DNA of 64,000 nt from Macrostomum hystrix (taxonomy: Eukaryota; Animalia; Platyhelminthes): assembly GCA_950097015.1 (NCBI GenBank), contig CATNEN010000041.1, forward strand, positions 2,356,001 to 2,420,000, in the 5' to 3' direction. Each line of letters starts with the position of its first letter. The stretch's first letter is position 1. Below the pieces are notes generated by a model that was given only the letters and a program-made list of their open reading frames with translations, searched no databases and was not told the DNA's origin. A program made the translations under genes and the position numbers. Shown piece after piece: positions 3,269-51,456 of this stretch.

Positions 3269-4503
3269 ATGTCTTTAGAGCTGTCCCAGCGTGTGTCTGC
3301 TGCGCGGCCCCCTCAAGGCGCGACTGCCGACCCACCTGCAGTGCAGCAGCTGCTCCCAGCCCCTGTTCAACGGCTTCCAGACTCCGCACGGATGTCGCCT
3401 GTGCCAGCCCTGCGTCACCGGCCTGCTGTCACCGGTGGAGAAGCGGCGATGTCCCGGAAACACGGAGGCCTGCAGAGACACCACGGAGGAGATCGAGGTG
3501 AGCCAGGCCTCCTGTCTTCCCGACATTGCGACGAGACGTGAGGTCGGCCGACTGAAGGTCCTGTGTCCGAACCTGCGTGCCGGCTGCTCTGCTGCACTCA
3601 GCTGGTCTGTCATGGACCAGCATCTGGACAGCTGCGACTTCCAGGCTTTGCCGTGCGAGCTCTGCGGCCAGCAGGTGACGAGGAGGGACATGCAGCGTCA
3701 CTCAACCAGAGAGTGCCTGCAGAGGAAAGTGAGCTGTGAGCTGTGCTCTCAGCAGGTGCCCTTTGGTGAGATGGAGAGCAGGCACAGGAATCTGGAGTCC
3801 GATGTGTGCTGTCCGATGTTCTCAGCTGCCTGCCCTCACTGCGGTGACCGGAGCACTCCGATGAGCAGGACAGCATACCAGGCTCACCTGTCTGACTGTC
3901 CGGAGAAACCAGTCGAGTGCAAGTACTCTCACCTGGGCTGCCAGACAAGAGCCCGAAGGTCCGAGATGGATAAGCACTACACGGAGTGCATGGACTCTCA
4001 CCTGGAGCTCGTGGACTCAAGGCTCCGACAGGCCGCGGAGCTGCCTCAGACAGCAGGTGAGCGGCACTTTATGCCTATTGATTTTTAACAGTTATTGCTT
4101 ATTTTTATTGCCCGTAATTACATAATGACATTGCACAACGGCTATCTAATTCTGGCTGTCCTGACGCGCCCGCATCGCTCCTTCATTTCCAGCAGTCGCA
4201 ATGCCGCAGTTTTCCACCAGTTCGGCGACTTCTGTCGAAAGCGGCGAGGTGGCCGACGTGAAGCGGCGAGTCGGCAGCGTGTACGACCAGGTCAAGAGGC
4301 TGCAGGTGAACGTGGCCAACTGGGCGCACAGCACAATGGAGCTCGAGCAGATGGCAGACCGGTTCGGCGGCGTGTCGCAGCTCCGGACTCTGCTGGCTCA
4401 GCTGGATGAGCGCACGAGAAATATTGAACAGCTGCAGCAGCAGCTGCAGCAACAGGTGCAGCAGCTGCAGCAGGATAGGACGCTTCCTAATTTGGAGGAT
4501 TAA
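3269..4503 (+). pseudogene. TRAF-like copy 1 (RING, TRAF zinc fingers, coiled coil, no MATH), frameshifted; exons 3269-4056 and 4193-4503
   Basis: ATG at 3269 (MSLELSQRV). A 2-bp deletion near 3328 (actgccg versus actgtgccg in the other copies) shifts the frame before the RING. The downstream frame encodes CSSC...HGCRLCQPC...RRCP and CELC/CPHC zinc fingers; phase-1 intron 4057-4192; exon 2 coiled coil ends TAA. The deletion could be a sequencing error. Confidence 0.8.
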
Positions 4504-5290
4504 TGTTAGATGATTGGATGATTGGACTGCCAAAGGTTTAACTTTCTGAAAGCTGGCTTAGCCATAGATATGTTGTACGGCTTTGCTCAGCACTTGTCTA
4601 TGTTTTATACAGATTAGCATCTTTCTGTTGCTCAACTTCCAAGCATTTCTGGCAAAATTTTTGTATCACTTGACTATTTGTGCTATTCAGTACTGCAAAT
4701 TGTAGGGTTGATTCTTACACTACCCACCATTCTATTATCCAATCTTGATTTCAGGCTTGAAGACCCCGCACCGCTGCATTTTCAAGGCCAAGTGGCTAGA
4801 TATTTGCAAAATTCAATATTTTTAACCAAATATTTTTTGCTACATATTTTTTGTTGTAAGTAGTTGACGTTTTCATCTCGTTGATTTCAATAAACATCTG
4901 CAGGCATTTTGGCACAGCAGTGTGCTCTGGTGTCTTTAGCTGGCCGATCGCAGAATATCGCAGAAATGCAACTGGAAGGTCTTAACAGCATTCTCTGTTT
5001 GGTTTCGTTGACTTGCGCAATGCAGTCTAAATTTAGACGGTCACTATTGTGAAACTGCTTCTGCACTGATTGCTAACTAGTGCTTGCCGCTGGTGCAATG
5101 CATTGTGTTTGGTATGTAAAAGTGTTTTTATTACTGTTAGCATCAGCAATATTACTGATGTTATTACAGTTCAAAGTACACTGTAGTCCATGCTTCATTG
5201 CTGTGATAGCAACCAGTGACAATATTTTCCCACTAGGGTTAGGATAGAATCTTGAGAGATCGCCGTGGACTGAGAGGCCGCCACACTCCG

Positions 5291-6790
5291 AATTCTAGAC
5301 AACCTGCTGCTGACATCCATTTCACTGCTGCTCCAAATTCTAGACAACCTGCTGCTGACATCCATTTCACTGCTGCTCCAAATTCTAGACAACCTGCTGC
5401 TGACATCCATTTCACTGCTGCTCCAAATTCTATACAACCTGCTGCTGACATCCATTTCACTGCTGCTCCAAATTCTAGACAACCTGCTGCTGACATCCAT
5501 TTCCCTGCTGCTCCAAATTCTAAAGAACCTGCTGCTGACATCCATTTCACTGCTGCTCCAAATTCTAGACAACCTGCTGCTGACATCCATTTCACTGCTG
5601 CTCCAAATTCTAGACAACCTGCTGCTGACATCCATTTCACTGCTGCTCCAAATTCTAGACAACCTGCTGCTGACATCCATTTCACTGCTGCTCCAAATTC
5701 TAAAGAACCTGCTGCTGACATCCATTTCACTGCTGCTCCAAATTCTAAAGAACCTGCTGCTGACATCCATTTCACTGGTGCTCCAAATTCTAGACAACCT
5801 GCTGCTGACATCCATTTCACTGCTGCTCCAAATTCTAAGAACCTGCTGCTGACATCCATTTCACTGCTGCTCCAAATTCTAAAGAACCTGCTGCTGACAT
5901 CCATTTCACTGCTGCTCCAAATTCTAGACAACCTGCTGCTGACATCCATTTCACTGCTGCTCCAAATTCTAGACAACCTGCTGCTGACATCCATTTCACT
6001 GGTGCTCCAAATTCTAGACAACCTGCTGCTGACATCCATTTCACTGCTGCTCCAAATTCTAAAGAACCTGCTGCTGACATCCATTTCACTGCTGCTCCAA
6101 ATTCTAAAGAACCTGCTGCTGACATCCATTTCACTGCTGCTCCAAATTCTAAAGAACCTGCTGCTGACATCCATTTCCCTGCTGCTCCAAATTCTAAAGA
6201 ACCTGCTGCTGACATCCATTTCACTGCTGCTCCAAATTCTAAAGAACCTGCTGCTGACATCCATTTCACTGCTGCTCCAAATTCTAGACAACCTGCTGCT
6301 GACATCCATTTCACTGCTGCTCCAAATTCTAAAGAACCTGCTGCTGACATCCATTTCACTGCTGCTCCAAATTCTAGACAACCTGCTGCTGACATCCATT
6401 TCACTGCTGCTCCAAATTCTAAAGAACCTGCTGCTGACATCCATTTCACTGCTGCTCCAAATTCTAGACAACCTGCTGCTGACATCCATTTCACTGCTGC
6501 TCCAAATTCTAGACAACCTGCTGCTGACATCCATTTCACTGCTGCTCCAAATTCTAAAGAACCTGCTGCTGACATCCATTTCACTGCTGCTCCAAATTCT
6601 AGACAACCTGCTGCTGACATCCATTTCACTGCTGCTCCAAATTCTAGACAACCTGCTGCTGACATCCATTTCACTGCTGCTCCAAATTCTAGACAACCTG
6701 CTGCTGACATCCATTTCACTGCTGCTCCAAATTCTAGACAACCTGCTGCTGACATCCATTTCACTGCTGCTCCAAATTCTAAACAACCTG
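5291..6790. repeat. 45-bp minisatellite (about 33 copies)
   Basis: Unit ccaaattctagacaacctgctgctgacatccatttcactgctgct with a taaaga variant. Confidence 0.97.
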
Positions 6791-6796
6791 TCCAAG

Positions 6797-8482
6797 TGTG
6801 TGTCCACAGCTGATCCTGCAGTGTGTCCACAGCTGATCCAGTGTGTGTCCACAGCTGATCCAGTGTGTGTCCACAGCTGATCCAGTGTGTGTCCACAGCT
6901 GATCCAGTGTGTGTCCACAGCTGATCTAGTGTGTGTCCACAGCTGATCCAGTGTGTGTCCACAGCTGATCCAGTGTGTGTCCACAGCTGATCCAGTGTGT
7001 GTCCACAGCTGATCTAGTGTGTGTCCACAGCTGATCCAGTGTGTGTCCACAGCTGATCTAGTGTGTGTCCACAGCTGATCCAGTGTGTGTCCACAGCTGA
7101 TCCAGTGTGTGTCCACAGCTGATCCAGTGTGTGTCCACAGCTGATCCAGTGTGTGTCCACAGCTGATCCAGTGTGTGTCCACAGCTGATCCAGTGTGTGT
7201 CCACAGCTGATCCAGTGTGTGTCCACAGCTGATCTAGTGTGTGTCCACAGCTGATCCAGTGTGTGTCCACAGCTGATCCAGTGTGTGTCCACAGCTGATC
7301 CAGTGTGTGTCCACAGCTGATCCAGTGTGTGTCCACAGCTGATCCAGTGTGTGTCCACAGCTGATCCAGTGTGTGTCCACAGCTGATCCAGTGTGTGTCC
7401 ACAGCTGATCCAGTGTGTGTCCACAGCTGATCTAGTGTGTGTCCACAGCTGATCCAGTGTGTGTCCACAGCTGATCTAGTGTGTGTCCACAGCTGATCCA
7501 GTGTGTGTCCACAGCTGATCCAGTGTGTGTCCACAGCTGATCCAGTGTGTGTCCACAGCTGATCCAGTGTGTGTCCACAGCTGATCTAGTGTGTGTCCAC
7601 AGCTGATCCAGTGTGTGTCCACAGCTGATCCAGTGTGTGTCCACAGCTGATCCAGTGTGTGTCCACAGCTGATCCAGTGTGTGTCCACAGCTGATCCAGT
7701 GTGTGTCCACAGCTGATCTAGTGTGTGTCCACAGCTGATCCAGTGTGTGTCCACAGCTGGTCTAGTGTGTGTCCACAGCTGATCCAGTGTGTGTCCACAG
7801 CTGATCCAGTGTGTGTCCACAGCTGATCCAGTGTGTGTCCACAGCTGATCCAGTGTGTGTCCACAGCTGATCCAGTGTGTGTCCACAGCTGATCTAGTGT
7901 GTGTCCACAGCTGATCCAGTGTGTGTCCACAGCTGATCCAGTGTGTGTCCACAGCTGATCCAGTGTGTGTCCACAGCTGATCTAGTGTGTGTCCACAGCT
8001 GATCCAGTGTGTGTCCACAGCTGATCCAGTGTGTGTCCACAGCTGATCTAGTGTGTGTCCACAGCTGATCCAGTGTGTGTCCACAGCTGATCTAGTGTGT
8101 GTCCACAGCTGATCCAGTGTGTGTCCACAGCTGATCCAGTGTGTGTCCACAGCTGATCCAGTGTGTGTCCACAGCTGATCCAGTGTGTGTCCACAGCTGA
8201 TCCAGTGTGTGTCCACAGCTGATCCAGTGTGTGTCCACAGCTGATCCAGTGTGTGTCCACAGCTGATCCAGTGTGTGTCCACAGCTGATCCAGTGTGTGT
8301 CCACAGCTGATCCAGTGTGTGTCCACAGCTGATCCAGTGTGTGTCCACAGCTGATCCAGTGTGTGTCCACAGCTGATCCAGTGTGTGTCCACAGCTGATC
8401 CAGTGTGTGTCCACAGCTGATCCTGTGTGTGTCCACAGCTGATCCAGTGTGTGTCCACAGCTGATCCAGTTTGTGTCCACAG
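6797..8482. repeat. 22-bp minisatellite (about 76 copies), directly abutting the 45-bp array
   Basis: Unit gtgtgtgtccacagctgatcca. Confidence 0.97.
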
Positions 8483-9898: not shown

Positions 9899-12800
9899 AT
9901 GACTCTACTGCCAGTTGTTGCTCTGCTGCTTGCTCGCACAGTCGGTGAGTGCCGCAGTTCTCAAGCTGTGCTCTATGGTCTAGCGCATTTCCATGAGAAC
10001 CTTCGCTTCTTGGAACCCGGGACCCTGTTGGGAAAGAAGTCCTTTTGGGAGTCCGAGCTTCACAAACTACAGCGCAATATTGAAAGTAATTCAGAGCACC
10101 GCAATGGAACCCGGCCACTCAGAAGTTAGATCTCGCAATATTCAAAAGAAAAGCAGTTCCGTTGTAAAAGGCACTCCATGAAAATTGTGCAGGCTCTATC
10201 ATCCCATTTGTGAATAATTCTAAAACAGGAAGCTTGCGCTTGAACGAAGCTTGTGAACCAGTGCTTAGAGCTTTGGGATTGAAGGGAGCTTGTGAACCAG
10301 TGCTTAGAGCTTTTGGATTGAAGGGAGCTTGTGAACCAGTGCTTAGAGCTTTGGGATTGAAGGGAGCTTGTGAACCAGTGCTTAGAGCTTTGGGATTGAA
10401 GGGAGCTTGTGAACCAGTGCTTAGAGCTTTGGGATTGAAGGGAGCTTGTGAACCAGTGCTTAGAGCTTTTGGATTGAAGGGAGCTTGTGAACCAGTGCTT
10501 AGAGCTTTGGGATTGAAGGGAGCTTGTGAACCAGTGCTTAGAGCTTTGGGATTGAAGGGAGCTTGTGAACCAGTGCTTAGAGCTTTGGGATTGAAGGGAG
10601 CTTGTGAACCAGTGCTTAGAGCTTTGGGATTGAAGGGAGCTTGTGAACCAGTGCTTAGAGCTTTTGGATTGAAGGGAGCTTGTGAACCAGTGCTTAGAGC
10701 TTTGGGATTGAAGGGAGCTTGTGAACCAGTGCTTAGAGCTTTGGGATTGCTCTGCCACTGCCAGTCACCCTCACAAGGTCAATATTTGATTTAGCTATGT
10801 TTTTAGCATCCAGAAAATTGTCTGAGCAACTCGCTCACTTCCACCTTTGCTCCGTCATGAATTACTTATTGAAAACTAAAGTCTCCATTTGGCATGCGCC
10901 TGGAATGAGAATGTCGCAGTAATAATCCTGAAAATGGAAATGTTCGAACTATACCTCAAAATCCGATTCAGTTCTCTCACTCACCGAAATCTGTTGTAGG
11001 AACGAACGCTTTGAGCAGCGGCTCAACCAGACGTTTCGAATTGGTGGTGAATGGCTCTGTGGGTTTTGACGCCTTCGTGAGCAGCAGCTTGTTCTTCGAG
11101 TCCAATGTCCAGCAAGACAGGCGGTGCCTGATGTCGTGCCACATGAGCGACTGCGCAGTCGCCGTTTTCAACAGGACCGACCGCGTCTGTCAGCTGGTCG
11201 TCATCAACTCTGTGGCGTGGGGCAGGCCCGGGCCGGAGGGCAGTCACGCAGCCAGGAACCTCACCGCGGCTGATGGAATGGCGATCTGGAAGTCAGACGA
11301 CTTCGAGCAGCAACTGCTGGCAAGGTCGCCCAGTCGATTTCTGGTCTTTTCGAGTGAGTTGAATATGATTTTGAAAGAATAGTCAAGCAGTGAACCTAAT
11401 CATTCTTGCAAGGTGACCGTGCGCACTGGAACATCATTTGGCGACAATCGATCCACAGCTTGCTCGAAGGTAATTCTGCTTATTGCACTGACCCAAGAGC
11501 ACATAGACTCTCACGCACACATGGATACGCATACCGGCACACTCTTGCACAGGTGACAGGTGTGACTCTTCATCGAGAAGCATTCAATCAACAAGAGTAC
11601 ACATCTTAGCCATGGGTGTTAGTCCTAATGTGTGTAATTTAGTTGTAAGTCTTGGTGCCCTGCCCTCACAAAGAGACCTAAATGACTGGGGACCTCGCTG
11701 CGGATTCGAGCTCAAGGACCTTGGTGCAAGAGTCGCACGCGCTCCGCCACTCACTCCGGATATCAAGTGATTGCAATTCAGAAAACATTCGAGTTCATGG
11801 ACAAAGAGTTCCAAGCCTCTGTGCTCTAAAGACGCGTTCAGACTGTCATCAATAGAGGCAAAAACCCACAATTAGACTTCCTTTTTAGGGCCATACATTT
11901 GAAAATTATGTGAGAGATACAATTGAGACTACTGACAACAGTAGAACAGCAAAGACTTGGCTGCAAAACTCTCACATAACACTAAAAAAGTATCGCCATA
12001 AAAATGCACACTGAGAGTGGTGGGAGAGGACTGCGTGTGGCTATGGCTGACTGATGAAGGCAAACAAGCCAGAAACCGGTCTCGGTCTGCCAGCGCGAGG
12101 TTCGTTCCCCACTTTTAAGTGTGTTACACATCACATAAATGTACACAAAGAACAAGTAATTTGACGGCTGTGTGTACGAACCTAATGCTAATTTGAAAGA
12201 AAAAAAATCTGTGTCTGAGACAAACGTACATTCGGTACATAGTTAGCGAATTTGATGGCTGAGCATCGAAATGCACTATGCCACTAAATGCATGCACAAT
12301 ATAACTACATGTATGTCAGTAAGTTTCCCTAATGCTACTGGTGTTAGCAAGTGCAGGCATTGATTAGGTGGGTTTGTTTGAGTATTTAGCTCGGCACTAG
12401 GTGGCACACTGCTGACTCTTTGGTGCCAGTACTTTGGCGCTTCCATTCCATTGTTAATGTAGCATTGCTTGGGCTTCTCGAATCAAGATTTCGATCCTGT
12501 GTGCCTTTGGAGAATAAATGTGCCCTGTTTCCCTCCCTTCAGGCAGCGGTTCGGGCAGGTTCGGAACTGTCCAGAACGTCACCATCAGCGTTCCCGGCTG
12601 CTACCGCATCGAGGCCTTCGGAGCTGCAGGCGGAAACACAAACAGCTTAATTGGCGGCAAGGGCGCTTCAGCTGCTGGCAGCTTCGAGCTCACCGCCGGC
12701 ACTCAACTCAGCATTGTTGTCGGCCAGGCGGGCGGAAGCCTGGGTTGCTACTACGGTGCTGGCGGTGGTGGCGGAAGCTTCGTGTACATCAGCAGCGTCA

Positions 12801-14357: not shown

Positions 14358-14740
14358 CTAAACTTTACATTCTCGTATTTGCCTTTTGAATATTTTCTTG
14401 TTATTATGTACAAGCACATACTTTTTCTCAGTTAGCCCATAAAGTTTTTTTTTAGCTGAAAATGCTAAATCATTTCTTCTCTGGCTAATCCTAACGCTGC
14501 TCTCCTCTACTATATTATGTTGCGCTCTAAAATTGCAGCAATTTTAAAACCACTTTGCAATCTGTAGAATGTTTTTTCCTCTTGTCTTTAGTGAGTCAGG
14601 GTGTCCACAGCTGAATTAGTGAGCTGCCTAAGTGAGTTTCTAATAAAATAATCTTTTAAACTTGCACATTGTTAAGCTGCCCCTTTAATTCTATGTAGAT
14701 ATTTTTTAATTAATATATATTGTGTGCCGGCCTTAAACTT

Positions 14741-15440
14741 GTGCTAAAAACCCACCGTTTGCGCTGATTGGCCAGCCACCACTCGCTGATGGAGGGTGTG
14801 CTAAAACCCCACCCTTTTGCGCTGATTGGCCAGCCAGCTCTTGCTGATGGAGGGTGCGCTAAAACCCCACCTTTTGCGCTGATTGGCCAGCCACCACTCG
14901 CTGATGAAGGTTGTGCTAAAACCCCACACTTTTGTGCTGATTGGCCAGCCACCACTCGCTGATGGAGGGTGTGCTAAAACCCCACACTTTTGCGCTGATT
15001 GGCCAGCCACCACTCGCTGATGAAGGTTGTGCTAAAACCCCACACTTTTGCGCTTATTGGCCAGCCACCACTCGCTGATGGAGGGTGTGCTAAAACCCCA
15101 CACTTTTGCGCTGATTGGCCAGCCACCACTCGCTGATGAAGGTTGTGCTAAAACCCCACACTTTTGTGCTGATTGGCCAGCCACCACTCGCTGATGAAGG
15201 TTGTGCTAAAACCCCACACTTTTGTGCTGATTGGCCAGCCACCACTCGCTGATGGAGGGTGTGCTAAAACCCCACACTTTTGCGCTGATTGGCCAGCCAC
15301 CACTCGCTGATGAAGGTTGTGCTAAAACCCCACACTTTTGCGCTGATTGGCCAGCCACCACTCGCTGATGAAGGTTGTGCTAAAACCCCACACTTTTGCG
15401 CTTATTGGCCAGCCACCACTCGCTGATGAAGGTTGTGCTT
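14741..15440. repeat. 58-bp minisatellite (about 12 copies)
   Basis: Unit gctaaaaccccacacttttgcgctgattggccagccaccactcgctgatgaaggttgt. Confidence 0.96.
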
Positions 15441-15643: not shown

Positions 15644-16879
15644 TCAATTCCTACGCTGGGGACCACGTTGTGCCTGTTGCTCCAGCACTTGTACTTGCTG
15701 CTGCAGTGCTTGCACCTGCTGCTGCAGCAGCTCAGCGCATCTCGACCGCTCATCCAGCTGACTCAGCAGAGTTCGCAAACGATCGACACCACCAAATTTG
15801 TCAACCAGTTCATCAAGCTCAACGGTGCTCTGCGCCCAGTTGGCCACGTTCACCTGCAGCCGCTTGAATTTCTGCACCAGGTTGCCAACCCGACGGTTCG
15901 CTTCTGCGACCTCGGCATTGTCTGCAGATAGCGAAGACCGACCGACTGAAACTGCAACAGGTGAAGAGTTTCAGAGAGCTGATTGAAGCAAAGAACTGAT
16001 CAGCACACGCCTGCCAGCCTCTGCTGATTTGCTAATCAAGTCCAATATTGAAATAGTTGAGTACACAATGTCACAATGTCAACTGTCCTCACCGGGTGCC
16101 TGCGGCTCACTGGCCGACTGTATAAGCACTGAGTCCAACAGCTCCATGTGAGAGTCCGTGCATTGCTGATAATGATTATCCAGCTCAGATCTTCGGACTC
16201 TCACTTTACAGCCCAGGTGAGAGTACTTGCACTCAACTGGCTTCTCCGGACATTCAGACAGGTGAGCCAGGTACGAGTTTCTGTCGAGCCTTAGTCTCGG
16301 GCTTCGGCAGTGAGGGCAAGCAGCCGAGAACATCGGACAGCACACATCGGACTCCAGATTCCTGTGCCTGCTCTCCATCTCGCTGATGATCACCTGTTGA
16401 GTACACTTGCCGCATCGCTCCTTTCTCTGCAGGCACTCTCTGTTGGAGTGGCGCTGCATGTCCCTCCTCGTCACCTGCTGGCCGCAGAGCTCGCACGGCA
16501 AAGCCTGGAAGTCGCAGCTGTCCAGATGCTGGTCCATGAGAGACCAGCTGAGTGCGGCAGAGCAGCCGGCATGCAGGTTCGGACACAGGACCTTCAGTCG
16601 GCCGACCTCACGTCTCGTCGCAATGTCGGGAAGACAGGAGGCCTGGCTCACCTCGATCTCCTCCGTGGTGTCTCTGCAGGCCTCCGTGTTTCCGGGACAT
16701 CGCCGCTTCTCCACCGGTGACAGCAGGCCGGTGACGCAGGGCTGGCACAGGCGACATCCGTGCGGAGTCTGGAAGCCGTTGAACAGAGGCTGGGAGCAGC
16801 TGCTGCACTGCAGGTGGCTCGGCACAGTCGCGCCTTGAGGGGGCCGCGCACCTGACACTCGCTTGGGCAACTCAGACAT
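15644..16879 (-). CDS. TRAF-like copy 2, intact, MATH-less; exons 16879-16093 and 15951-15644
   Basis: MSELPKRV start, RING and zinc fingers, donor G|gtgagg, acceptor ttgcag|, exon 2 coiled coil (KRLQVNVANWAQST) ending TGA. Confidence 0.88.
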
Positions 16880-17498
16880 TGTGTCTGGTGGATAGCAGTA
16901 CAATTTGAATTTCATATTAAATTGTACTTTTTGTAGGCAAGCTTCTCAGTTTTAACATTCAAATTACAATATTTATATGTTTCTCTTTCTTTTTTACTTT
17001 CTCAATTCTCTAGATTTGCCAGCTATACGAAAATGACGGTAAAAACTTTACTATATTTTTTGCCGAAGGAGCCCCTGTAGGGAATCACATTTTATTTTTT
17101 GAGTGCCAATTTCGCAATGGTAGCTACAAGTGGTAGTCTCACCTGACGCGTTTCTGCGTTTGATGCGTTTGAGAGGTGGTTTCTTAATTGGATGCAAGTA
17201 GCGTTTGTTCTGAGATTTGGACTGTGACTTCATTTTGCTATAGTTATCATGCAAGAATGGAGGAAAGCTCTTACTTCTGTGTTGAATGCGTTAGCTGAGT
17301 CCGATTGCACAGCATCGACAGCAAGGCAATTTTTACTCTATTTTTACAGCTAGATAGATATCTGTTCATAAAACTGCCAACAGTAAAGTAGCGCGCAGTA
17401 AACTTTGAATTGTCAGTTAGTTTCCTGTTTGTGGACGCTGCTGAGAGTTTTTAACTTCTTACTTTTATTCCAATTTTCACATTTTTTGCCATCAGCGC

Positions 17499-17564: not shown

Positions 17565-18316
17565 ATCGCCACAAGAGTCTGCAGAGAGCAAGCGCACAGA
17601 GAGCGGAGCAGAGGAGTGGGTTTGTGGTAGCTTCAGAGTCTAGACGGCATAAATTTGGACAGAAGAAGTCACGAACAAGTATTTAAACAAGTTGAGCAGG
17701 TTCGATAATAATTTGAGCACTTTTGATAATGTGGCTGTACAATTTTAGTTAGCGTACTCGTGTTAAAACGGATTTGAAACTAACGACAGACCGCCAAGCG
17801 CAGTTGTCTATGGCCAAATTCCACAGGTATTGACTGATATCAGCGGGCAAAATATAGATATGCTGCTCGGCCTGAAACGACTCTAAACAGAGCTCTAAAC
17901 TGAGTGTCAATCAATCATTTCCATGGATTAATTAGAACTGAAGCATTAAAGGGGAACTGGAAATTAAATTACAATTGTAAGGAGTATTAAGAAGTAGGAA
18001 AAGTTAACATTATACCAATATTGATAGCCCGAGCAGCCTATCCATATTAGTGCTGTAGTTAGCGGGCATGAAAGGCGTATAGCGCTGTGCGTATCTATGG
18101 AATTCGACCATAGACAACAGCGGCGAAAGGGCTGCCGTTAGTTTCAACCTCGTTTCAACACGCGTAGGCTAACTACAATCATAGATTCTTTGAGAATATG
18201 AATCCAATATGGGTTCAACGCCTGCAAGGCGTGATCCGTGTAAACTGTACAATAACTTTCTCTAATAAGTCGGATGTGTCGCAATTCGATCATAAAAATA
18301 GTATCTTTCAGCTCAG

Positions 18317-33087: not shown

Positions 33088-33649
33088 CAAGCAATTGCTA
33101 ATAAAGCCTGCCCAGTCTTCTACAGTTCTGAAAAATATTTATAGGCTCTCCCAGACTGACATTTGACTTGGCTGGAAAAAAGGACGGAATTTTCCATTAT
33201 ATTCACGTTTCATTGCTAAAAATATATTTCTCACATGCCCTCCAGTGTACAAGCGGCGGTGCATGCATGCAGGTGACATGCAGCTGGGTTGTTGAACTAC
33301 CTTGTAGATTGAAGTGCCAAAATTAATGCGAGCGTTGCGAGCGCAAATACGAGCTATACTCCAAAAAGTATATTTATAGAGCCTGAGCCACCAGTGCTCT
33401 GATAACGCGTTGCTAGATCGCACACGTGAATGTTGGTGTGATTCACTGCGAGGCCAGAATCAAGAGTATAAATATTTTTGTTGCTAGGACTAGTGCATCA
33501 AATTATACCCAACCACGCAATACGAAAATAGGATTCTTCGATAGGCTGCTAGGCTACCACAAGGAAATATAATAGGGCTGGTCAATGATATCATTCTCAA
33601 CGACTTGGTAAGGATTCTGATGAATTCTGATAAATCTGAAGGATTTGCT

Positions 33650-36867: not shown

Positions 36868-37444
36868 TGTTCCTTCTTTGGGCCTTAATGTTGTGCAGTC
36901 GTTTAGCATTTTTAGCTGAGTTTTTCTATTACTTTCTTTTTATAGCAAAGCATTTAGGCCTAATTAAGTCAGAGTTTGTACCTTCTTAGTTCGATCTTGT
37001 GAGCTAATAAAAAGAGCTATTTGCAAACTATTGACTAAAAGTTTGAGCGCCTTTTTGTCTAAATTGCTTTGCTTTATGGCGGAGTGAGCTAGTGTGTGTA
37101 ATTTACATGTAACTGGGCTTCTAATCTATATTACTTTGCAGCTAAATCCGTGTCCATTGTAGAATTATATAAACGATCCAGACCGTTCCTTTATTTAGTA
37201 ACTTAGTGACATCCTTGATTCTGCGATGCGTTCTGTGTTTTTTGCCCGAACTGGCTTTGGCCGGGTACTCGGTGTGTGCACATTGTGCATGGAGGATGTT
37301 AAGAAAGCCTTGCAGTGCGGAAATCATTTTTAAAAAAGCCCAGAAGAAGCTTCTGGGTAGTTTTGCATGACACTTGCCGAGATATTTTTATCTAGCTAAA
37401 ACACACGAAAAACGACAGAGAATGCCGATCGGTTCTGCTTTCGT

Positions 37445-37990
37445 GGGCCAGCAGAACAACCTCCGAGCTTTTCTTGGCCTGCAGGACAACCTCCGGGCTT
37501 TTCTTGGCCTGCAGGACAACCTCCGGGCTTTTCTTGGCCAGCAGAACAACCTCCGAGCTTTTCTTGGCCTGCAGGACAACCTCCGGGCTTTTCTTGGCCA
37601 GCAGAACAACCTCCGAGCTTTTCTTGGCCTGCAGGACAACCTCCGAGCTTTTCTTGGCCTGCAGGACAACCTCCGAGCTTTTCTTGGCCTGCAGGACAAC
37701 CTCCGAGCTTTTCTTGGCCTGCAGGACAACCTCCGAGCTTTTCTTGGCCTGCAGGACAACCTCCGAGCTTTTCTTGGCCTGCAGGACAACCTCCGAGCTT
37801 TTCTTGGCCTGCAGGACAACCTCCGAGCTTTTCTTGGCCTGCAGGACAACCTCCGAGCTTTTCTTGGCCTGCAGGACAACCTCCGAGCTTTTCTTGGCCT
37901 GCAGGACAACCTCCGAGCTTTTCTTGGCCTGCAGGACAACCTCCGAGCTTATCTTGGCCTGCAGGACAACCTCCGAGCTTTTCTTGGCCT
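37445..37990. repeat. 27-bp minisatellite (about 20 copies)
   Basis: Unit gcaggacaacctccgagcttttcttggcct-type. Confidence 0.96.
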
Positions 37991-38166
37991 GCCGATACTT
38001 TTTTACGCAAGATGTCTGGCATGTACACAAATCATAGCCGTGTACAATGAACCAATAAGCTGACAATAATAATAATTGCAGGAGTATCCGCTGTGATCCC
38101 GTCCAAACTCGGCAGGCCAAGAAAATTGGCACATCATTAGCTGACACTAGACCTGCACCCAGCAAG

Positions 38167-38452: not shown

Positions 38453-39009
38453 CCCTCTATAAATACTTGTGAAATGAACTGACCTTTCGAAATATCTTGT
38501 GACCGTTGCGCCAGTGCATGGCTTGGTTTCAGTCTGCAAACTATACAATCTTCAAGGTTGTCAATTTGGATTGGGTCGCTGGGTTACTCGGCTTGTTTCT
38601 GGTCCAACAATACATGTATATATATATATTAGATTTTGAACAATACACAGTGGTTTTGTATTGTCAATGTGTAATGGAAGTTTTTCTGAAAGTTTGATAA
38701 TATTCCACAAGCAAATTGGAGTAAGATAATAACAATTTACACCCGCTCGAACTTAAGCTAATTTTAAATTTTAAGTTACGTGTGACAAGTAAATTGTAGC
38801 TAAGGCATAAATATAGACCTGTTTACAGGTTCTTTCGACGAAATAAACAGACAACTTGTCTTTTTTTTAACTGACAGCTCTAAAGTAATTCAGCATTCAT
38901 TTGAAACGGTTCTCTTCGAGGCTTCAAACAGTAGAGCAACGAAGCATTCGTTCACTTGAAGTGAAAAATCCAACAAGCCAGGCTTCAAGCCAGCCTCAAG
39001 AAAGGCTCT

Positions 39010-39890
39010 CACGAAACCAACCACAAAACACAGCAGCGTAGGCTTTCAGCATCGCTCCTGACGAAACCAACCACAAAACACAGCAGCGAAGGCTTTCAGC
39101 ATCGCTCCTGACGAAACCAACCACAAAACACAGCAGCGAAGGCTTTCAGCATCGCTCCTGACGAAACCAACCACAAAACACAGCAGCGAAGGCTTTCAGC
39201 ATCGCTCCTGACGAAGCCAACCACAAAACACAGCAGCGTAGGCTTTCAGCATCGCTCCTGACGAAGCCAACCACAAAACACAGCAGCGTAGGCTTTCAGC
39301 ATCGCTCCTGACGAAGCCAACCACAAAACACAGCAGCGTAGGCTTTCAGCATCGCTCCTGACGAAGCCAACCACAAAACACAGCAGCGTAGGATTTCAGC
39401 ATCGCTCCTGACGAAGCCAACCACAAAACACAGCAGCGTAGGCTTTCAGCATCGCTCCTGACGAAACCAACCACAAAACACAGCAGCGAAGGCTTTCAGC
39501 ATCGCTCCTGACGAAGCCAACCACAAAACACAGCAGCGTAGGCTTTCAGCATCGCTCCTGACGAAACCAACCACAAAACACAGCAGTGTAGGCTTTCAGC
39601 ATCGCTCCTGACGAAGCCAACCACAAAACACAGCAGCGAAGGCTTTCAGCATCGCTCCTGACGAAATCAACCACAAAACACAGCAGTGTAGGCTTTCAGC
39701 ATCGCTCCTGACGAAGCCAACCACAAAACACAGCAGCGTAGGATTTCAGCATCGCTCCTGACGAAGCCAACCACAGAACAGACAGCGTAGGATTTCAGCA
39801 TCTCTCCTGACGAAACCAACCACAAAACACAGCAGCGAAGGCTTTCAGCATCGCTCCTGACGAAGCCAACCACAGAACAGACAGCCTAGG
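39010..39890. repeat. 50-bp minisatellite (about 17 copies)
   Basis: Unit acgaaaccaaccacaaaacacagcagcgtaggctttcagcatcgctcctg. Confidence 0.96.
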
Positions 39891-40368
39891 ATTTCGCTGC
39901 ATCCTACCCAGTGCGAATTCCACCGCTCCAGAACTTTTCGTATTTTGTAAATGTCGGCCGCAATTTTGCGAAATCAGTAAAATGCTGGCATAATGGGCTG
40001 TCGGATGAATAAATCTATCTTCTGTGCCTCGTAATAAATCTGCTGATTAATTACTTCTTTGAATGTTTAACTACGACTACATTTTGTAAATAATTATGAA
40101 AAATAAATGAAACGAAAGAACTGGATTTATACGGGTCCCATCATTCTTGTTTTTTTATTCAATACATATTTTTCCTGCTTGAGCTAACCAGGGGGGGGCA
40201 ATTAGGGACGCATTCCAGTAAGGACAGTAAGCTAAGCTTAATTTATTAATTAGGTACATTTACACGAAAATGTACTAGATGGAGCTGAGGAAGCAATGCC
40301 TGCAAAGCTACTCGATGTATGACTACGGACTTTTACGATGTTAGTTGTTCAATGTGCTTATTACTAGC

Positions 40369-41644
40369 GGCTCAGGACAACTCTAACTGCAGGTGGTTTA
40401 AGTAGACCCTGCGGCTCAGGACAACTCTAACTACAGGTGGTTTAAGTAGACCCTGCGGCTCAGGACAACTCTAACTGCAGGTGGTTTAAGTAGACCCTGC
40501 GGCTCAGGACAACTCTAACTGCAGGTGGTTTAAGTAGACCCTGCGGCTCAGGACAACTCTAACTACAGGTGGTTTAAGTAGACCCTGCGGCTCAGGACAA
40601 CTCTAACTACGGGTGGTTTAAGTAGACCCTGCGGCTCAGGACAACTCTAACTGCAGGTGGTTTAAGTAGACCCTGCGGCTCAGGACAACTGTAACTACAG
40701 GTGGTTTAAGTAGACCCTGCGGCTCAGGACAACTCTAACTACAGGTGGTTTAAGTAGACCCTGCGGCTCAGGACAACTCTAACTGCAGGTGGTTTAAGTA
40801 GACCCTGCGGCTCAGGAAAACTCTAACTGCAGGTGGTTTAAGTAGACCCTGCGGCTCAGGACAACTGTAACTACAGGTGGTTTAAGTAGACCCTGCGGCT
40901 CAGGACAACTCTAACTGCATGTGGTTTAAGTAGACCCTGCGGCTCAGGACAACTCTAACTGCAGGTGGTTTAAGTAGACCCTGCGGCTCAGGACAACTCT
41001 AACTGCAGGTGGTTTAAGTAGACCCTGCGGCTCAGGACAACTGTAACTACAGGTGGTTTAAGTAGACCCTGCGGCTCAGGACAACTCTAACTGCAGGTGG
41101 TTTAAGTAGACCCTGCGGCTCAGGACAACTCTAACTGCAGGTGGTTTAAGTAGACCCTGCGGCTCAGGACAACTCTAACTGCAGGTGGTTTAAGTAGACC
41201 CTGCGGCTCAGGACAACTCTAACTGCAGGTGGTTTAAGTAGACCCTGCGGCTCAGGACAACTCTAACTGCAGGTGGTTTAAGTAGACCCTGCGGCTCAGG
41301 ACAACTCTAACTACAGGTGGTTTAAGTAGACCCTGCGGCTCAGGACAACTCTAACTGCAGGTGGTTTAAGTAGACCCTGCGGCTCAGGACAACTCTAACT
41401 GCAGGTGGTTTAAGTAGACCCTGCGGCTCAGGACAACTCTAACTGCAGGTGGTTTAAGTAGACCCTGCGGCTCAGGACAACTCTAACTACAGGTGGTTTA
41501 AGTAGACCCTGCGGCTCAGGACAACTCTAACTGCAGGTGGTTTAAGTAGACCCTGCGGCTAAGGACAACTCTAACTGCAGGTGGTTTAAGTAGACCCTGC
41601 GGCTCAGGACAACTCTAACTGCAGGTGGTTTAAGTAGACCCTGC
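40369..41644. repeat. 44-bp minisatellite (about 29 copies)
   Basis: Unit gcggctcaggacaactctaactgcaggtggtttaagtagaccct. Confidence 0.97.
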
Positions 41645-41724
41645 TCACCGTTTTCTCATGTGACTAATTTCTCACTTTCGAACGATGATTTGTGGAAGCA
41701 CAAGTTTTAACGCAATTGTCTGAT

Positions 41725-43204: not shown

Positions 43205-44446
43205 CTATTGTACACGCTGCGATTGCAGCAGCTGCAGCTGTTGCACCTGTTGCTGCAGTTGTGCCAGCTGTTGCTGCAGCTGATCAATGCACCTGGTGCG
43301 CTCATCCAGCTGAGCCAGCAGAGTCCGAAGCTGCGACACGCCGCCGAACCGGTCTGCCATCTGCTCGAGCTCATTGGTGCTGTGCGCCCAGTTGGCCACG
43401 TTCACTTGCAGCCTCTTGAACTGGTCGTACACGCTGCCGACTCGCCGCTTCACGTCGGCCACCTCTCGGCTTTCGACAGGAGTCGCCGAGCTGGCCGAAG
43501 ACTGCGACACTGCGAACGCTAAAATGCAAAGGCAAGGAGAGGAGGCGAACGTCTGTCAGCGAAAATTCGTTCTTGCTTTGAGTCACATAACGGAGCTCTC
43601 AGCCTTGTGTCTGGAATTGTGATATCACTTGTGCTAAGGCAACAGCGAGAGCATTTCACCTGCTGTCTGAGGCAGCATCGCGGCCTGTCGGAGCCTTGAG
43701 TCCACGAGCTCCAGGTGAGAGTCCATGCATTCCCTGTAGTGCTTATCCATCTCGGACCTTCGGGCTCTTGTCTGGCAGCCCAGGTGAGAGTACTTGCACT
43801 CGACTGGCCTCTCTGGACAGTCAGACAGGTGAGCCAGGTATGCTGGCCTGTTCATCGGAGTGCTCCGGTCACCGCAGTGAGGACAGGCAGCTGAGAACAT
43901 CGGACAGCACACATCGGACTCCAGATTCCTGTGCCTGCTCTCCATCTCACCAAAGGGCACCTGCTGAGAGCACAGCTCACAGCTCACTTTCCTCTGCAGG
44001 CACTCTCTGTTGGAGTGGCGCTGCATGTCCCTCCTCGTCACCTGCTGGCCGCAGAGCTCGCACGGCAAAGCCTGGAAGTCGCAGCTGTCCAGATGCTGGT
44101 CCATGAGAGACCAGCTGAGTGCGGCAGAGCAGCCGGCACGCAGGTTCGGACACAGGACCTTCAGTCGGCCGACCTCGCGTCTCGTCGCAATGTCGGGAAG
44201 ACAGGAGGCCTGGCTCACCTCGATCTCCTCCGTGGTGTCTCTGCAGGCCTCCGTGTTTCCGGGACATCGCCGCTTCGCCACCGGTGACAGCAGGCCGGTG
44301 ACGCAGGGCTGGCACAGGCGACATCCGTGCGGAGTCTGGAAGCCGTTGAACAGGGGCTGGGAGCAGCTGCTGCACTGCAGGTGGGTCGGCACAGTCGCCT
44401 CTTGAGGGGACCGCGCATCAGACACTCGCTTGGGCAACTCAGACAT
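43205..44446 (-). CDS. TRAF-like copy 6, MATH-less, near-identical to copy 5 including the intron; exons 44446-43660 and 43518-43205
   Basis: Same splice sites and intron sequence as copy 5; ends QSQRVQ*. Confidence 0.88.
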
Positions 44447-45637: not shown

Positions 45638-47632
45638 ATGTCTTTCGAGCTGAACAAGCGAGTGTCAGGTGCGCGGCCTCCTCAAGGCGCGACTGTGCCG
45701 ACCCACCTGCAGTGCAGCAGCTGCTCCCAGCCCCTGTTCAACGGCTTCCAGACTCCGCACGGATGTCGCCTGTGCCAGCCCTGCGTCACCGGCCTGCTGT
45801 CACCGGTGGCGAAGCGGCGATGTCCCGGAAACATGGAGGCCTGCAGAGACACCACGGAGGAGATCGAGGTGAGCCAGGCCTCCTGTCTTCCCGACATTGC
45901 GACGAGACGCGAGGTCGGCCGACTGAAGGTCCTGTGTCCGAACCTGCGTGCCGGCTGCTCTGCCGCACTCAGCTGGTCTCTCATGGACCAGCATCTGGAC
46001 AGCTGCGACTTCCAGGCTTTGCCGTGCGAGCTCTGCGGCCAGCAGGTGACGAGGAGGGACATGCAGCGCCACTCAACCAGAGAGTGCCTGCAGAGGAAAG
46101 TGAGCTGTGAGCTGTGCTCTCAGCAGGTGCCCTTTGGTGAGATGGAGAGCAGGCACAGGAATCTGGAGTCCGATGTGTGCTGTCCGATGTTCTCAGCTGC
46201 CTGCCCTCACTGCAGTGACCGGAGCACTCCGATGAGCAGGACAGCATACCTGGCTCACCTGTCTGACTGTCCGGAGAAGGTTCAGCAGCAAGTTCAGCAG
46301 CAAGTTCAGCAGCAGGTTCAGCAGCAGGTTCAGCAGCAGGTTCAGCAGCAGGTTCAGCAGCAGGTTCAGCAGCAGGTTCAGCAGCAGGTTCAGCAGCAGG
46401 TTCAGCAGCAGGTTCAGCAGCAGGTTCAGCAGCAGGTTCAGCAGCAGGTTCAGCAGCAGGTTCAGCAGCAGGTTCAGCAGCAGGTTCAGCAGCAGGTTCA
46501 GCAGCAGGTTCAGCAGCAGGTTCAGCAGCAGGTTCAGCAGCAGGTTCAGCAGCAGGTTCAGCAGCAGGTTCAGCAGCAGGTTCAGCAGCAGGTTCAGCAG
46601 CAGGTTCAGCAGCAGGTTCAGCAGCAGGTTCAGCAGCAGGTTCAGCAGCAGGTTCAGCAGCAGGTTCAGCAGCAGGTTCAGCAGCAGGTTATGTGTGCTC
46701 TATCTATCGCTCTAAAGGGGACACTTTCAAAGGAGACACTTTCAAAGGAGACACTTTCAAAGGAGACACTTTCAAAGGAGACACTTTCAAAGGAGACACT
46801 TTCAAAGGAGACACTTTCAAAGGAGACACTTTCAAAGGAGACACTTTCAAAGGAGACACTTTCAAAGGAGACACTTTCAAAGGAGACACTTTCAAAGGAG
46901 ACACTTTCAAAGGAGACACTTTCAAAGGAGACACTTTCAAAGGAGACACTTTCAAAGGAGACACTTTCAAAGGAGACACTTTCAAAGGAGACACTTTCAA
47001 AGGAGACACTTTCAAAGGAGACACTTTCAAAGGAGACACTTTCAAAGGAGACACTTTCAAAGGAGACACTTTCAAAGGAGACACTTTCAAAGGAGACACT
47101 TTCAAAGGAGACACTTTCAAAGGAGACACTTTCAAAGGAGACACTTTCAAAGGAGACACTTTCAAAGGAGACACTTTCAAAGGAGACACTTTCAAAGGAG
47201 ACACTTTCAAAGGAGACACTTTCAAAGGAGACACTTTCAAAGGAGACACTTTCAAAGGAGACACTTTCAAAGGAGACACTTTCAAAGGAGACACTTTCAA
47301 AGGAGACACTTTCAAAGGAGACACTTTCAAAGGAGACACTTTCAAAGGAGACACTTTCAAAGGAGACACTTTCAAAGGAGACACTTTCAAAGGAGACACT
47401 TTCAAAGGAGACACTTTCAAAGGAGACACTTTCAAAGGAGACACTTTCAAAGGAGACACTTTCAAAGGAGACACTTTCAAAGGAGACACTTTCAAAGGAG
47501 ACACTTTCAAAGGAGACACTTTCAAAGGAGACACTTTCAAAGGAGACACTTTCAAAGGAGACACTTTGCCCATTCTGGGGCTTCCGTTTCATCGAAGGCA
47601 TGCAAATAGAAACTTTGAAAGACATAAACTAG
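45638..47632 (+). CDS. TRAF-like copy 7: RING and zinc fingers to HLSDCPEK, then in-frame (QQVQ)n and (SKETL)n repeats; probably truncated or non-functional
   Basis: 664-aa open frame; TRAF homology stops at 46279. Confidence 0.6.
   Translation: MSFELNKRVSGARPPQGATVPTHLQCSSCSQPLFNGFQTPHGCRLCQPCVTGLLSPVAKRRCPGNMEACRDTTEEIEVSQASCLPDIATRREVGRLKVLCPNLRAGCSAALSWSLMDQHLDSCDFQALPCELCGQQVTRRDMQRHSTRECLQRKVSCELCSQQVPFGEMESRHRNLESDVCCPMFSAACPHCSDRSTPMSRTAYLAHLSDCPEKVQQQVQQQVQQQVQQQVQQQVQQQVQQQVQQQVQQQVQQQVQQQVQQQVQQQVQQQVQQQVQQQVQQQVQQQVQQQVQQQVQQQVQQQVQQQVQQQVQQQVQQQVQQQVQQQVQQQVQQQVQQQVQQQVQQQVQQQVMCALSIALKGTLSKETLSKETLSKETLSKETLSKETLSKETLSKETLSKETLSKETLSKETLSKETLSKETLSKETLSKETLSKETLSKETLSKETLSKETLSKETLSKETLSKETLSKETLSKETLSKETLSKETLSKETLSKETLSKETLSKETLSKETLSKETLSKETLSKETLSKETLSKETLSKETLSKETLSKETLSKETLSKETLSKETLSKETLSKETLSKETLSKETLSKETLSKETLSKETLSKETLSKETLSKETLSKETLSKETLSKETLSKETLSKETLCPFWGFRFIEGMQIETLKDIN
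46280..46690. repeat. 12-bp repeat (gttcagcagcag)n, about 34 copies
   Basis: Directly visible; encodes VQQQ in the TRAF frame. Confidence 0.97.
46717..47567. repeat. 15-bp perfect repeat (gagacactttcaaag)n, about 56 copies
   Basis: Directly visible and homogeneous. Confidence 0.97.
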
Positions 47633-49845: not shown

Positions 49846-51456
49846 ATGTCACTTCAAGAACTGCCTCAGCGAGTGTCGGGTGCACGGCCCCATCAAGACG
49901 CGACTGTGCCGACCCACCTGCAGTGCAGCAGCTGCTCCCAGCCCCTGTTCAACGGCTTCCAGACTCCGCACGGATGTCGTCTGTGCCAGCCCTGCGTCAC
50001 CGGCCTGCTGTCACCGGTGGAGAAGCGGCGATGTCCCGGAAACACGGAGGCCTGCAGAGACACCACGGAGGAGATCGAGGTGAGCCAGGCCTCCTGTCTT
50101 CCCGACATTGCGACGAGACGTGAGGTCGGCCGACTGAAGGTCCTGTGTCCGAACCTGCGTGCCGGCTGCTCTGCCGCACTCAGCTGGTCTCTCATGGACC
50201 AGCATCTGGACAGCTGCGACTTCCAGGCTTTGCCGTGCGAGCTCTGCGGCCAGCAGGTGACGAGGAGGGACATGCAGCGCCACTCCAACAGAGAGTGCCT
50301 GCAGAGGAAGGAGCGATGCGGCAAGTGTACTCAACAGGTGATCATCAGCGAGATGGAGAGCAGGCACAGGAATCTGGAGTCCGATGTGTGCTGTCCGATG
50401 TTCTCGGCTGCCTGTCCTCACTGCCGCAATTCGAAAAGGAAATTCGATAGACGCGCGTACCTGGCCCACCTTTCAGAGTGCCCAGAGAGGCCAGTCGAGT
50501 GCAAGTACTATCGCCTGGGCTGCCGAGTGACAGTCTCTCGATCCGAGCTCGAAAAACACTACCGGGAGGGCTCGGACTCGCACATTTGTCTGCTGGATAT
50601 GAAGCTCAGGATGATTGGGTCTTCGTCTTCGACACCTCAGCCTAAACTTTCAGTGCCCTCTTCAAGCAGTCCCACTGAGATTTCCGATCTCAAGCGCCGG
50701 GTAGACTACATCAACTCGGCCTTCAAGAAGATGCAGGTCAGTGTGGCCAACTGGGCGCACACGATGCTTGAATTCGAGCAGTTGGCCGACAACTTCGGCG
50801 GCATCTCCCGGATGCGCGAGTCACTGCAGAGCTGTAGCGAGCGAGTTAGCCAGCTAGAGAGTCGCACTGGTGCTTCGAGACATCGCGTCGATGCTTTGCA
50901 AGCGTCGAGACCCGTGATGCTGCCGCAGGACTCTCAGCTGCAGCAGCTAGCGGGAAAGCTCGAGACTCGCCTGCTCAATCTGGAGAACACCAGCTACGAC
51001 GGCACCTTCATCTGGAGAGTGAGAAACCTCACGGAGAGCCGTTCACAGAAGCCAATCGAGTCGATTCCGTTCTTCCTTCGCCGATTCGGCCCCGCCTTCC
51101 GAATTCAATTGTACCTGAGTGGCGCGGGTGCAGGATCCGGCACTCACCTGTCCGTATACCTTGTGAACGTCCCTTACCAGCTTGATGACCCATCTGACTG
51201 GCCGATTGTTGCCGAGGCCACCTTCCGGCTAATAAATCTGAAAGATCGGCGACAAGACATTGTAAAGACCATTTCTATCAACACAGTCGACGAGAAGCGA
51301 CAGGCAGCTGAAGACGACTTCTTGATGTGCTGCGGGGAGCCCCGACTGCTGCCGCTTTCCGAGTTCAATGAGCGGTTCACCAAGGAGGACTGCTGCTTTC
51401 TCAAGGTGGAGGTCAGGGCAGTTGGTAGTGGGCGCGACCGCAGGACGGATCGATGA
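49846..51456 (+). CDS. Full-length intronless TRAF-family protein (RING, TRAF zinc fingers, coiled coil, MATH/TRAF-C), 536 aa; copy 8
   Basis: C-terminus LENTSYDGTFIWRV...IESIPFF...FRIQLYLSGAGAGSGTHLSVYL...DWP...TFRLIN...CGEPRLLPL..FTKEDCCFLKVEV is a TRAF-type MATH domain. No one-to-one ortholog assigned. Confidence 0.93.
   Translation: MSLQELPQRVSGARPHQDATVPTHLQCSSCSQPLFNGFQTPHGCRLCQPCVTGLLSPVEKRRCPGNTEACRDTTEEIEVSQASCLPDIATRREVGRLKVLCPNLRAGCSAALSWSLMDQHLDSCDFQALPCELCGQQVTRRDMQRHSNRECLQRKERCGKCTQQVIISEMESRHRNLESDVCCPMFSAACPHCRNSKRKFDRRAYLAHLSECPERPVECKYYRLGCRVTVSRSELEKHYREGSDSHICLLDMKLRMIGSSSSTPQPKLSVPSSSSPTEISDLKRRVDYINSAFKKMQVSVANWAHTMLEFEQLADNFGGISRMRESLQSCSERVSQLESRTGASRHRVDALQASRPVMLPQDSQLQQLAGKLETRLLNLENTSYDGTFIWRVRNLTESRSQKPIESIPFFLRRFGPAFRIQLYLSGAGAGSGTHLSVYLVNVPYQLDDPSDWPIVAEATFRLINLKDRRQDIVKTISINTVDEKRQAAEDDFLMCCGEPRLLPLSEFNERFTKEDCCFLKVEVRAVGSGRDRRTDR

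Follow-up and report, generated by a model that had tools for sequence, protein, structure and literature searches.

Paralogous genes that are otherwise homogenised by gene conversion can retain short islands that escape it, as in the spectral-tuning sites of the primate red and green opsins, the peptide-binding codons of MHC genes and the NLR clusters of plants. In mammals, region-limited conversion between the tandem innate-immunity paralogues TLR1 and TLR6 has been described in several species (Kruithof et al. 2007, PMC2077338), and in a planarian large lineage-specific sets of TRAF/MATH genes have been reported and proposed as immune candidates (Swapna et al. 2018, PMC6109357). Here we describe eight paralogues of a TRAF-type gene, each with a RING and TRAF zinc fingers, that lie clustered within 47 kb in a 64,000-nucleotide stretch of the flatworm Macrostomum hystrix (GCA_950097015.1, contig CATNEN010000041.1, positions 2,356,001 to 2,420,000; hereafter the window, in which positions are counted from its first nucleotide). 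These eight genes are very probably old paralogues that have exchanged internal stretches of exon 1 by interlocus gene conversion, with old patch alleles reassorted among them.

The first coding exons of the eight copies (c1 to c8) were aligned with those of two outgroup paralogues from contig C38 (L009 and L010), and column numbers below refer to this alignment. Divergence changes abruptly along the exon. The 5' end (columns 45-100) differs by 15% on average among the copies, and the core that follows (columns 101-496, 396 bp) has a mean pairwise difference of 1.26% (98.7% identity) against 18.2% to the outgroups. Next come a 44-bp patch, segment 1 (columns 497-540), with two alleles separated by 18-19 linked differences (41-43%), a 55-bp spacer (columns 541-595) with 0 differences among the copies, and a 55-bp patch, segment 2 (columns 596-650), with three alleles that lie 31-45% apart. 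In the tail (columns 677-850) c2 and c3 differ by 17.5%, c1, c5 and c6 differ from c2 and c3 by 23-26%, and comparisons with c8 give 36-37%, such that the copies are here as far apart among themselves as from the outgroups (22-34%). By their tails the copies form three lineages, alpha (c1, c5, c6), beta (c2, c3) and gamma (c8).

Outside the exon the similarity breaks down. The 5' flanks and introns are unalignable across subfamilies. Copies c1, c4 and c7 have a common 5' flank at 92-96% identity. Copies c5 and c6 are identical over the rest of the exon, both lying 4% from c1, and their 99% identity begins with the exon and stops at offset +711, with unrelated sequence outside on both sides. 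An earlier note on this DNA had described about 450 bp of near-identity beside diverged 5' ends, introns and coiled coils: the homogenised tract is real but measures about 400 bp plus the 55-bp spacer, and the divergence holds for flanks and introns, whereas c4 and c7 have no homologous coiled coil to compare. The eight copies themselves, together with every peptide variant listed in that note, were recovered at their positions by a six-frame motif search.

Synonymous divergence (dS) among the copies is 0.01-0.06 in the core and 0.6-1.1 between alpha, beta and gamma in the tail of the same exon, a 15- to 30-fold fall within a single exon. Constraint at the nucleotide level is unable to explain the core identity, because synonymous sites of the core are free to change, as its dS of 0.41-0.49 to the outgroups shows. 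Low core dS beside high tail dS in one exon reads as the signature of interlocus gene conversion. The exon front could instead have been copied newly to eight places, its similarity reflecting youth, and such a recent duplication is in line with the flank shared by c1, c4 and c7 and with c4 and c7 ending at nearly the same point; these two features show that the truncated copies c4 and c7 were made by partial duplication. As an account of the core, however, recent duplication is very improbable, since in c1, c2, c3, c5, c6 and c8 the homogenised part continues without a gap into homologous sequence at the deep dS of the tail, and it is further contradicted by the unalignable 5' flanks between subfamilies and by conflicting histories along the exon.

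The arrangement of the copies bears on the mode of exchange. Copies c1, c7 and c8 lie on the plus strand and c2, c3, c4, c5 and c6 on the minus strand, copies on opposite strands are as alike as those on the same strand, and the flanks are not homogenised. Homogenisation across opposite strands together with unrelated 5' flanks therefore means that the events were internal and non-reciprocal and were not unequal crossovers. Conversion in this cluster is mainly homogenising.

Against this uniform background, segment 1 and segment 2 occur as discrete variants. Segment 1 is of a KV type, KVSCELCSQQVPFGEM, in c1, c4, c5, c6 and c7 and of a KE type, KERCGKCTQQVIISEM, in c2, c3 and c8. Segment 2 is of the DRSTPM type in c1, c3, c5, c6 and c7, RSPRLRLD in c2 and c4, and RNSKRKFD in c8, and the spacer peptide between them, ESRHRNLESDVCCPMFSA, is unchanged in 8/8 copies. 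The two main types of segment 1 and the two of segment 2 occur in all four possible pairings, and about 17-19 linked sites define each. Copies c2 and c3 have identical KE blocks, from which that of c8 departs at one site at the block edge; c4 combines a c1-type flank with an RSPRLRLD block that differs at 2/55 sites from that of c2, which belongs to the beta lineage; and c3 joins a beta-type segment 1 and tail to a segment 2 of the c7/c1 type. Because near-identical blocks sit in copies with flanks of different lineages, the patches appear to have escaped the general homogenisation and also to have moved as blocks between lineages.

The age of the patches can be read from their synonymous sites. 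Between segment 1 alleles the proportions of non-synonymous and synonymous differences (pN and pS) are 0.29 and 0.83, and between segment 2 alleles 0.23-0.37 and 0.5-0.72; a ratio of non-synonymous to synonymous divergence (dN/dS) above 1 was seen in neither patch, in segments that are short and give low power. With synonymous sites near saturation between types, the patches are best seen as old sequence, alleles of long-separated lineages. That they arose afresh after homogenisation, through a burst of positive selection or a compensated frameshift, is extremely improbable. Patch dN (0.37-0.5) does exceed that of the tail, but the near-saturated synonymous sites, the identical blocks in copies of different lineages and the retention by each segment 1 allele of about half of the outgroup states all speak against fresh divergence, and a compensated frameshift is ruled out as the origin of the blocks by gapped alignment, which brings no gain in identity.

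Two other sources for the patches were considered. A whole-genome search for an outside donor, queried with the c2 and c8 blocks in stretches of 171 bp, returned only the eight copies and one paralogue at 77-78%. An overwriting of finger 3 by finger 2 as the source of KV (CELCGQQV versus CELCSQQV) drew on KV being closer than KE to the neighbouring finger in an alignment by eye; the idea is weakened by the fact that the KV stretch is mostly common to finger 3 of the outgroup paralogues. Among relatives outside the cluster, segment 2 ranks with the least conserved stretches, at a mean pairwise identity of 0.35. Segment 1 is fairly conserved in the same relatives (0.67-0.74), and both cluster alleles depart from its motif, which hints at a functional change in finger 3.

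Recombination tests support conflicting histories along the exon. Informative sites are incompatible in 971/1830 pairs, and the pairwise homoplasy index (PHI) is significant at three window sizes (p<=2e-4). In approximately unbiased (AU) tests, segment 2 data reject the segment 1 groupings {c2,c3,c8} (p=4e-5) and {c2,c3} (p=5e-9), and 5'-end data reject the segment 2 grouping {c2,c4} (p=0.004). A GENECONV-style permutation identified eight copy pairs with shared fragments reached by 0/5000 permutations, for example c2-c4 (columns 605-662), c3-c7 (615-671) and c2-c3 (352-539). Within the core, informative sites at columns 211, 311, 365 and 476 are incompatible in 4/6 pairs, and this preponderance of conflict in sequence only 1% diverged argues for exchange inside the core too.

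Measured against these results, the claim of the earlier note that no single tree fits the copies is borne out by the PHI result and by AU rejections from p=5e-9 to 4e-3, and its reading of patchwise gene conversion agrees with the conflicting histories, the shared-fragment permutations and the 15- to 30-fold fall in dS. It had the two segments occurring in all combinations; both are indeed mosaic, but 5/6 combinations exist, KV with RNSKRKFD being absent. Its proposal that the invariant spacer acts as the crossover tract finds no support. The argument is circular, because any exchange that parts segment 1 from segment 2 must resolve between them, and incompatible site pairs also lie elsewhere along the exon, at columns 88-211, 311-365 and 365-476, the last two inside the core.

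We propose that non-reciprocal exchange among the copies has recurred within the first coding exon, in conversion tracts ranging from tens of bases to about 1.2 kb. Such conversion would keep two parts at 98.7-100% identity, the roughly 400 bp of the RING and fingers 1-2 and the 55 bp that link finger 3 to finger 4. Deeply diverged or unrelated, by contrast, are the exon's 3' part, the introns and flanks, and the C-terminal modules. Both patches would last as old, strongly diverged alleles that are at times copied between lineages, giving the five segment 1/segment 2 combinations. Their survival might reflect selection against convertants, or a local mismatch of 40% that halts heteroduplex extension and repair. 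The common front module is perhaps kept uniform by a single E2 enzyme or dimer partner for all paralogues, an idea that may be entertained by analogy with the RING-finger 1 unit of TRAF6.

Several points weigh against this interpretation. Gene conversion is read here from comparison of sequences, which shows no single event directly and yields neither a rate nor a direction. The minimum number of recombination events (Rmin), 11, is inflated by homoplasy within the highly diverged blocks. That the cluster paralogues would predate their split from the paralogues on contig C38 is indicated by distances only, and in an AU test of the tail a monophyletic cluster is not rejected (p=0.50). No footprint of biased conversion was found in the core, where GC content at third codon positions (0.81-0.84, against 0.75-0.81 in the outgroups) is not in excess. 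Finally, the phase of segment 1 and segment 2 in each copy rests on the assembly alone, as it is not readable from the sequencing runs: the twelve public runs were available as k-mer contigs only, and k=31 contigs break within the invariant 55-bp spacer.

This last point would leave room for an artefact of assembly or polishing, in which a consensus across repeats homogenised the cores or mis-phased the patches. Yet the depths of contigs from a DNA run agree with the copy numbers of the assembly. In the best DNA run, single-copy sequence has a depth of 75-93, a 393-nt core contig 591, the contig of KE block and spacer 274, the RSPRLRLD block 146 and a base private to c2 about 70; the ratios fit about seven core copies, three KE, two RSPRLRLD and one c2-private base, as rough support only, given that summed contig depth is not a copy number. 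Copy-specific junctions also recur in exact contigs of other runs. An exact 518-nt contig at 20628-21145 (run X2) links the KE block with the 5' end specific to c3, and an exact 145-nt contig at 16205-16349 links the RSPRLRLD block with c2's own downstream sequence. They recur in another organism as well: a contig in run X9, which carries a second organism label, reads through the RSPRLRLD block with four differences and then across the c4 splice junction, so that a second organism has the copy-4 mosaic too, in spliced form. Together with the same architecture in an independent assembly of Macrostomum lignano, described below, these data make an artefact highly improbable.

The runs also contain evidence of expression. 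Runs X2 and X5 hold spliced joints with GT..AG on the gene strand, in c3 at 20322-20396 and in c2 at 15952-16092 and 16885-17274, from which it follows that these runs hold RNA and that c2 and c3 are transcribed.

The same homogenised-exon pattern recurs in M. lignano, with a discrete block at the same finger-4 loop. On contig NIVC01000672.1 of that species (about 39.5-75.4 kb; L017/L018) the RING-finger exon is present in at least seven copies, tandem and inverted, which are 97-99% identical from just past the start codon to the splice donor and have diverged flanks. One copy (mD, encoding P0003; L018:31352-32158, minus strand) differs at about 17 positions within a discrete block of some 45 bp in the finger-4 loop, and another (L018:25582-26372) has a 1-bp deletion. 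In the core tree the copies group by species, with support of 100/100 for the seven M. lignano copies and 100/99 for c1-c8, and the two species are about 80% identical to each other; individual copies could not be paired one to one as orthologues. The RSTPM type is the only segment 2 loop clearly common to both species. A basic 'RK' type of segment 2 shared across species by c8, c2/c4 and mD was dropped as a candidate, since by hand count c8 and mD agree at about 52% and mD and the common M. lignano type at about 59%. The C-terminal half of c8 gives a full-length match (42%) to P0005, an M. lignano protein that has a MATH domain, and the c8 core is slightly nearer to the group of M. lignano proteins without MATH (58%, compared with 51-52%); these affinities would fit, weakly, a c8 front end overwritten by its neighbours.

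Domain searches place the cluster in the TRAF family. Both a RING and TRAF-type fingers, the combination by which the family is recognised, are present in the exon, and all zinc ligands are invariant in the exon alignment. The first exon aligns with TRAF6 (PDB 3HCS and 5VO0) from the RING to finger 3 (E=2e-12 to 3e-10), and exon 1 of c5 matches these two RING-zinc-finger chains over residues 21-174 (phmmer). The near-identical stretch spans the RING and fingers 1-2, and the spacer forms the link between fingers 3 and 4. From the TRAF6 alignment and an AlphaFold model, segment 1 corresponds to the hairpin and Cys knuckle of finger 3 and segment 2 to the loop that follows the finger-4 knuckle; in the model of c5 exon 1 (mean predicted local distance difference test score, pLDDT, 75) segment 1 falls on the hairpin of finger 3 and on the beginning of the helix, and segment 2 in a loop of low confidence. 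Copy c8 is laid out as RING, TRAF zinc fingers, coiled coil and MATH, with Pfam matches to zf-TRAF (4.5e-12), MATH_2 (8e-20) and TRAF-mep_MATH (5e-11), and is the only MATH copy found in the window. A coiled-coil exon is present in c1, c2, c3, c5 and c6, for which a MATH domain sought within the window gave no match; c4 and c7 have neither coiled coil nor MATH, and their homology to the other copies stops after finger 4. The cluster is accordingly predicted from sequence to comprise one true TRAF (c8) and seven MATH-less TRAF-like genes or fragments.

The earlier note saw in conversion a generator of combinatorial zinc-finger diversity. An adaptive mix-and-match repertoire, in which the finger loops set partner specificity, selection keeps the alleles and conversion is favoured for the new combinations it yields, is conceivable, though we consider it unlikely. 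In its favour are the five of six combinations that exist, the conservation of segment 1 outside the cluster, from whose motif both alleles have nonetheless moved about three times faster at non-synonymous sites, the finger-4 loop as the sole discrete variable block in M. lignano as well, and the copy-4 combination kept in a second organism. On the other side, dN/dS stays below 1 for segment 1 and segment 2 alike, two of the carriers (c1 and c7) resemble pseudogenes, partner binding by the loops is purely hypothetical, and the passive blocking of conversion by mismatch-rich patches yields the same pattern. A more specific version is still more doubtful: here the finger-3 hairpin and finger-4 loop would be selected partner-specificity alleles that conversion reassorts on a uniform RING/E2-binding chassis, with c1 and c7 as donor reservoirs.

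In the window, the motif search found exactly eight copies of the exon. Taking the first base of the ESRHRN codon as the anchor of each, they lie at +3774 (c1), -16375 (c2), -20670 (c3), -27915 (c4), -36363 (c5), -43942 (c6), +46145 (c7) and +50356 (c8), the sign giving the strand. A DNA search of the whole 220-Mb assembly (42 contigs) recovered the eight as the sole genomic copies at >=97% identity (97-100%); the next paralogues are L009 and L010 at 83%, and older ones lie at about 72%. Close relatives in the protein database are only M. lignano proteins, at 49-62% identity. These searches were run exon by exon, with no exons joined.

Among the alpha copies, the first coding exon of c1, with RING and five TRAF fingers, occupies 3269-4056 on the plus strand (core 3329-3724, KV segment 1 3725-3768, spacer 3769-3823, DRSTPM-type segment 2 3824-3878). 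A 2-bp deletion about 60 nt past its ATG shifts the frame, and c1 is for this reason probably a pseudogene. The corresponding exons of c5 and c6, both on the minus strand, occupy 36081-36867 (core 36413-36808, KV segment 1 36369-36412, spacer 36314-36368, DRSTPM-type segment 2 36259-36313) and 43660-44446 (core 43992-44387, KV segment 1 43948-43991, spacer 43893-43947, DRSTPM-type segment 2 43838-43892), respectively.

The beta copies are likewise on the minus strand. The first coding exon of c2 (16093-16879; core 16425-16820, KE segment 1 16381-16424, spacer 16326-16380, RSPRLRLD segment 2 16271-16325) lies between the two introns seen in the spliced contigs of X2 and X5, the one at 15952-16092 being downstream and that at 16885-17274 in the 5' untranslated region. 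In c3 the exon spans 20397-21189 (core 20720-21115, KE segment 1 20676-20719, spacer 20621-20675, c7/c1-like DRSTPM-type segment 2 20566-20620), and its downstream intron is the one spliced at 20322-20396. Where the other copies have their start ATG, c3 has GTG (region 21160-21189), and contigs of X2 and X5 join an upstream exon in open frame at 21189.

The two truncated copies end differently. On the minus strand, c4 (27759-28428; RING and fingers 1-4) contains the core at 27965-28360, KV segment 1 at 27921-27964, the spacer at 27866-27920 and RSPRLRLD segment 2, near-identical to that of c2, at 27811-27865; its splice donor is at 27759|27758 (CAAG|GTAGGT) and the acceptor at 27673|27672, with the next exon starting from 27672. 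Reading frames further downstream in the region 25871-28428 (26514-27335 and 26101-26406) gave only sub-threshold matches to WD40/beta-propeller domains, under the Pfam cut-offs (best E=0.002), so that a TRAF7-like fusion is at most a plausible candidate. On the plus strand, c7 (45638-46279) contains the core at 45700-46095, KV segment 1 at 46096-46139, the spacer at 46140-46194 and DRSTPM-type segment 2 at 46195-46249. Past finger 4 (46280-47570) it passes directly into microsatellite arrays, first a (CAGCAGGTT)n-like one and next, at 46714-47567, a 15-bp array with repeats 99.9% identical, both within one open frame that reads QQQV... and KETLS..., and c7, like c1, looks like a pseudogene.

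Copy c8 is a single open frame of 536 amino acids at 49846-51456 on the plus strand (core 49911-50306, KE segment 1 50307-50350, spacer 50351-50405, RNSKRKFD segment 2 50406-50460). In its finger 5 (50530-50570) the last zinc ligand is Gly in place of Cys (YREGSDSH versus YRECMDSH in the other copies), and the fifth finger of the sole MATH-bearing copy may therefore be defective.

Much of the space between the copies is occupied by minisatellite arrays with units of about 22-57 bp that are 90-98% identical. They lie at 5286-8482, 10231-10749, 14739-15439, 33611-35214, 37439-37992, 39005-39895, 40367-41644, 54436-55091 and 60120-61165. Between c2 and c3, positions 17924-18291 hold a short high-copy repeat. 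Contig depth in the DNA run climbs there to 2500-8000, compared with about 85 in single-copy DNA, and many contigs stop at this point.

Gene conversion itself is well known, and the cluster reveals no new mechanism. It does present an unusually sharp case of region-limited concerted evolution, in which synonymous divergence passes from near saturation to a few percent within one exon, and it sets a uniform catalytic and dimerising front alongside diversifying loops and C-terminal modules in a family that is expanded in free-living flatworms. The cluster could serve for measuring conversion tract lengths and for separating a mismatch block from selection. Should the loop alleles prove to be selected, they would give flatworm innate immunity a mix-and-match set of TRAF-type ubiquitin ligases or adaptors, built in the germline, and the finger-4 block of M. 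lignano would reflect the same selective regime. In the literature searched, neither TRAF genes nor Macrostomum turned up in any report of conversion or mosaic fingers, and to that extent both the TRAF RING/zinc-finger family and the flatworm phylum are new for the island-escape pattern.

Compared with known systems, the exon resembles the RING-zinc-finger module of TRAF6 from the RING to finger 3, but unlike in a full TRAF a MATH domain accompanies it within the window only in c8. The planarian report (PMC6109357) concerns copy number, whereas the Macrostomum genes show clusters, MATH-less derivatives, conversion and mosaic fingers. As in the opsin, MHC and NLR genes, the paralogues are mostly homogenised, with short, functionally distinct segments that are diverged and mosaic; selection on the islands is documented in those genes and only inferred in Macrostomum. 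A close parallel is TLR1/TLR6, where, as here, conversion holds one coding part of tandem immune-signalling paralogues near-identical within a species, independently in different species, while the rest diverges. Unlike that two-copy system, the Macrostomum cluster has eight copies in both orientations, its C-terminal modules vary (MATH, coiled coil only, possibly a beta-propeller), and its homogenised tract holds two sharp internal islands of old, reassorted sequence.

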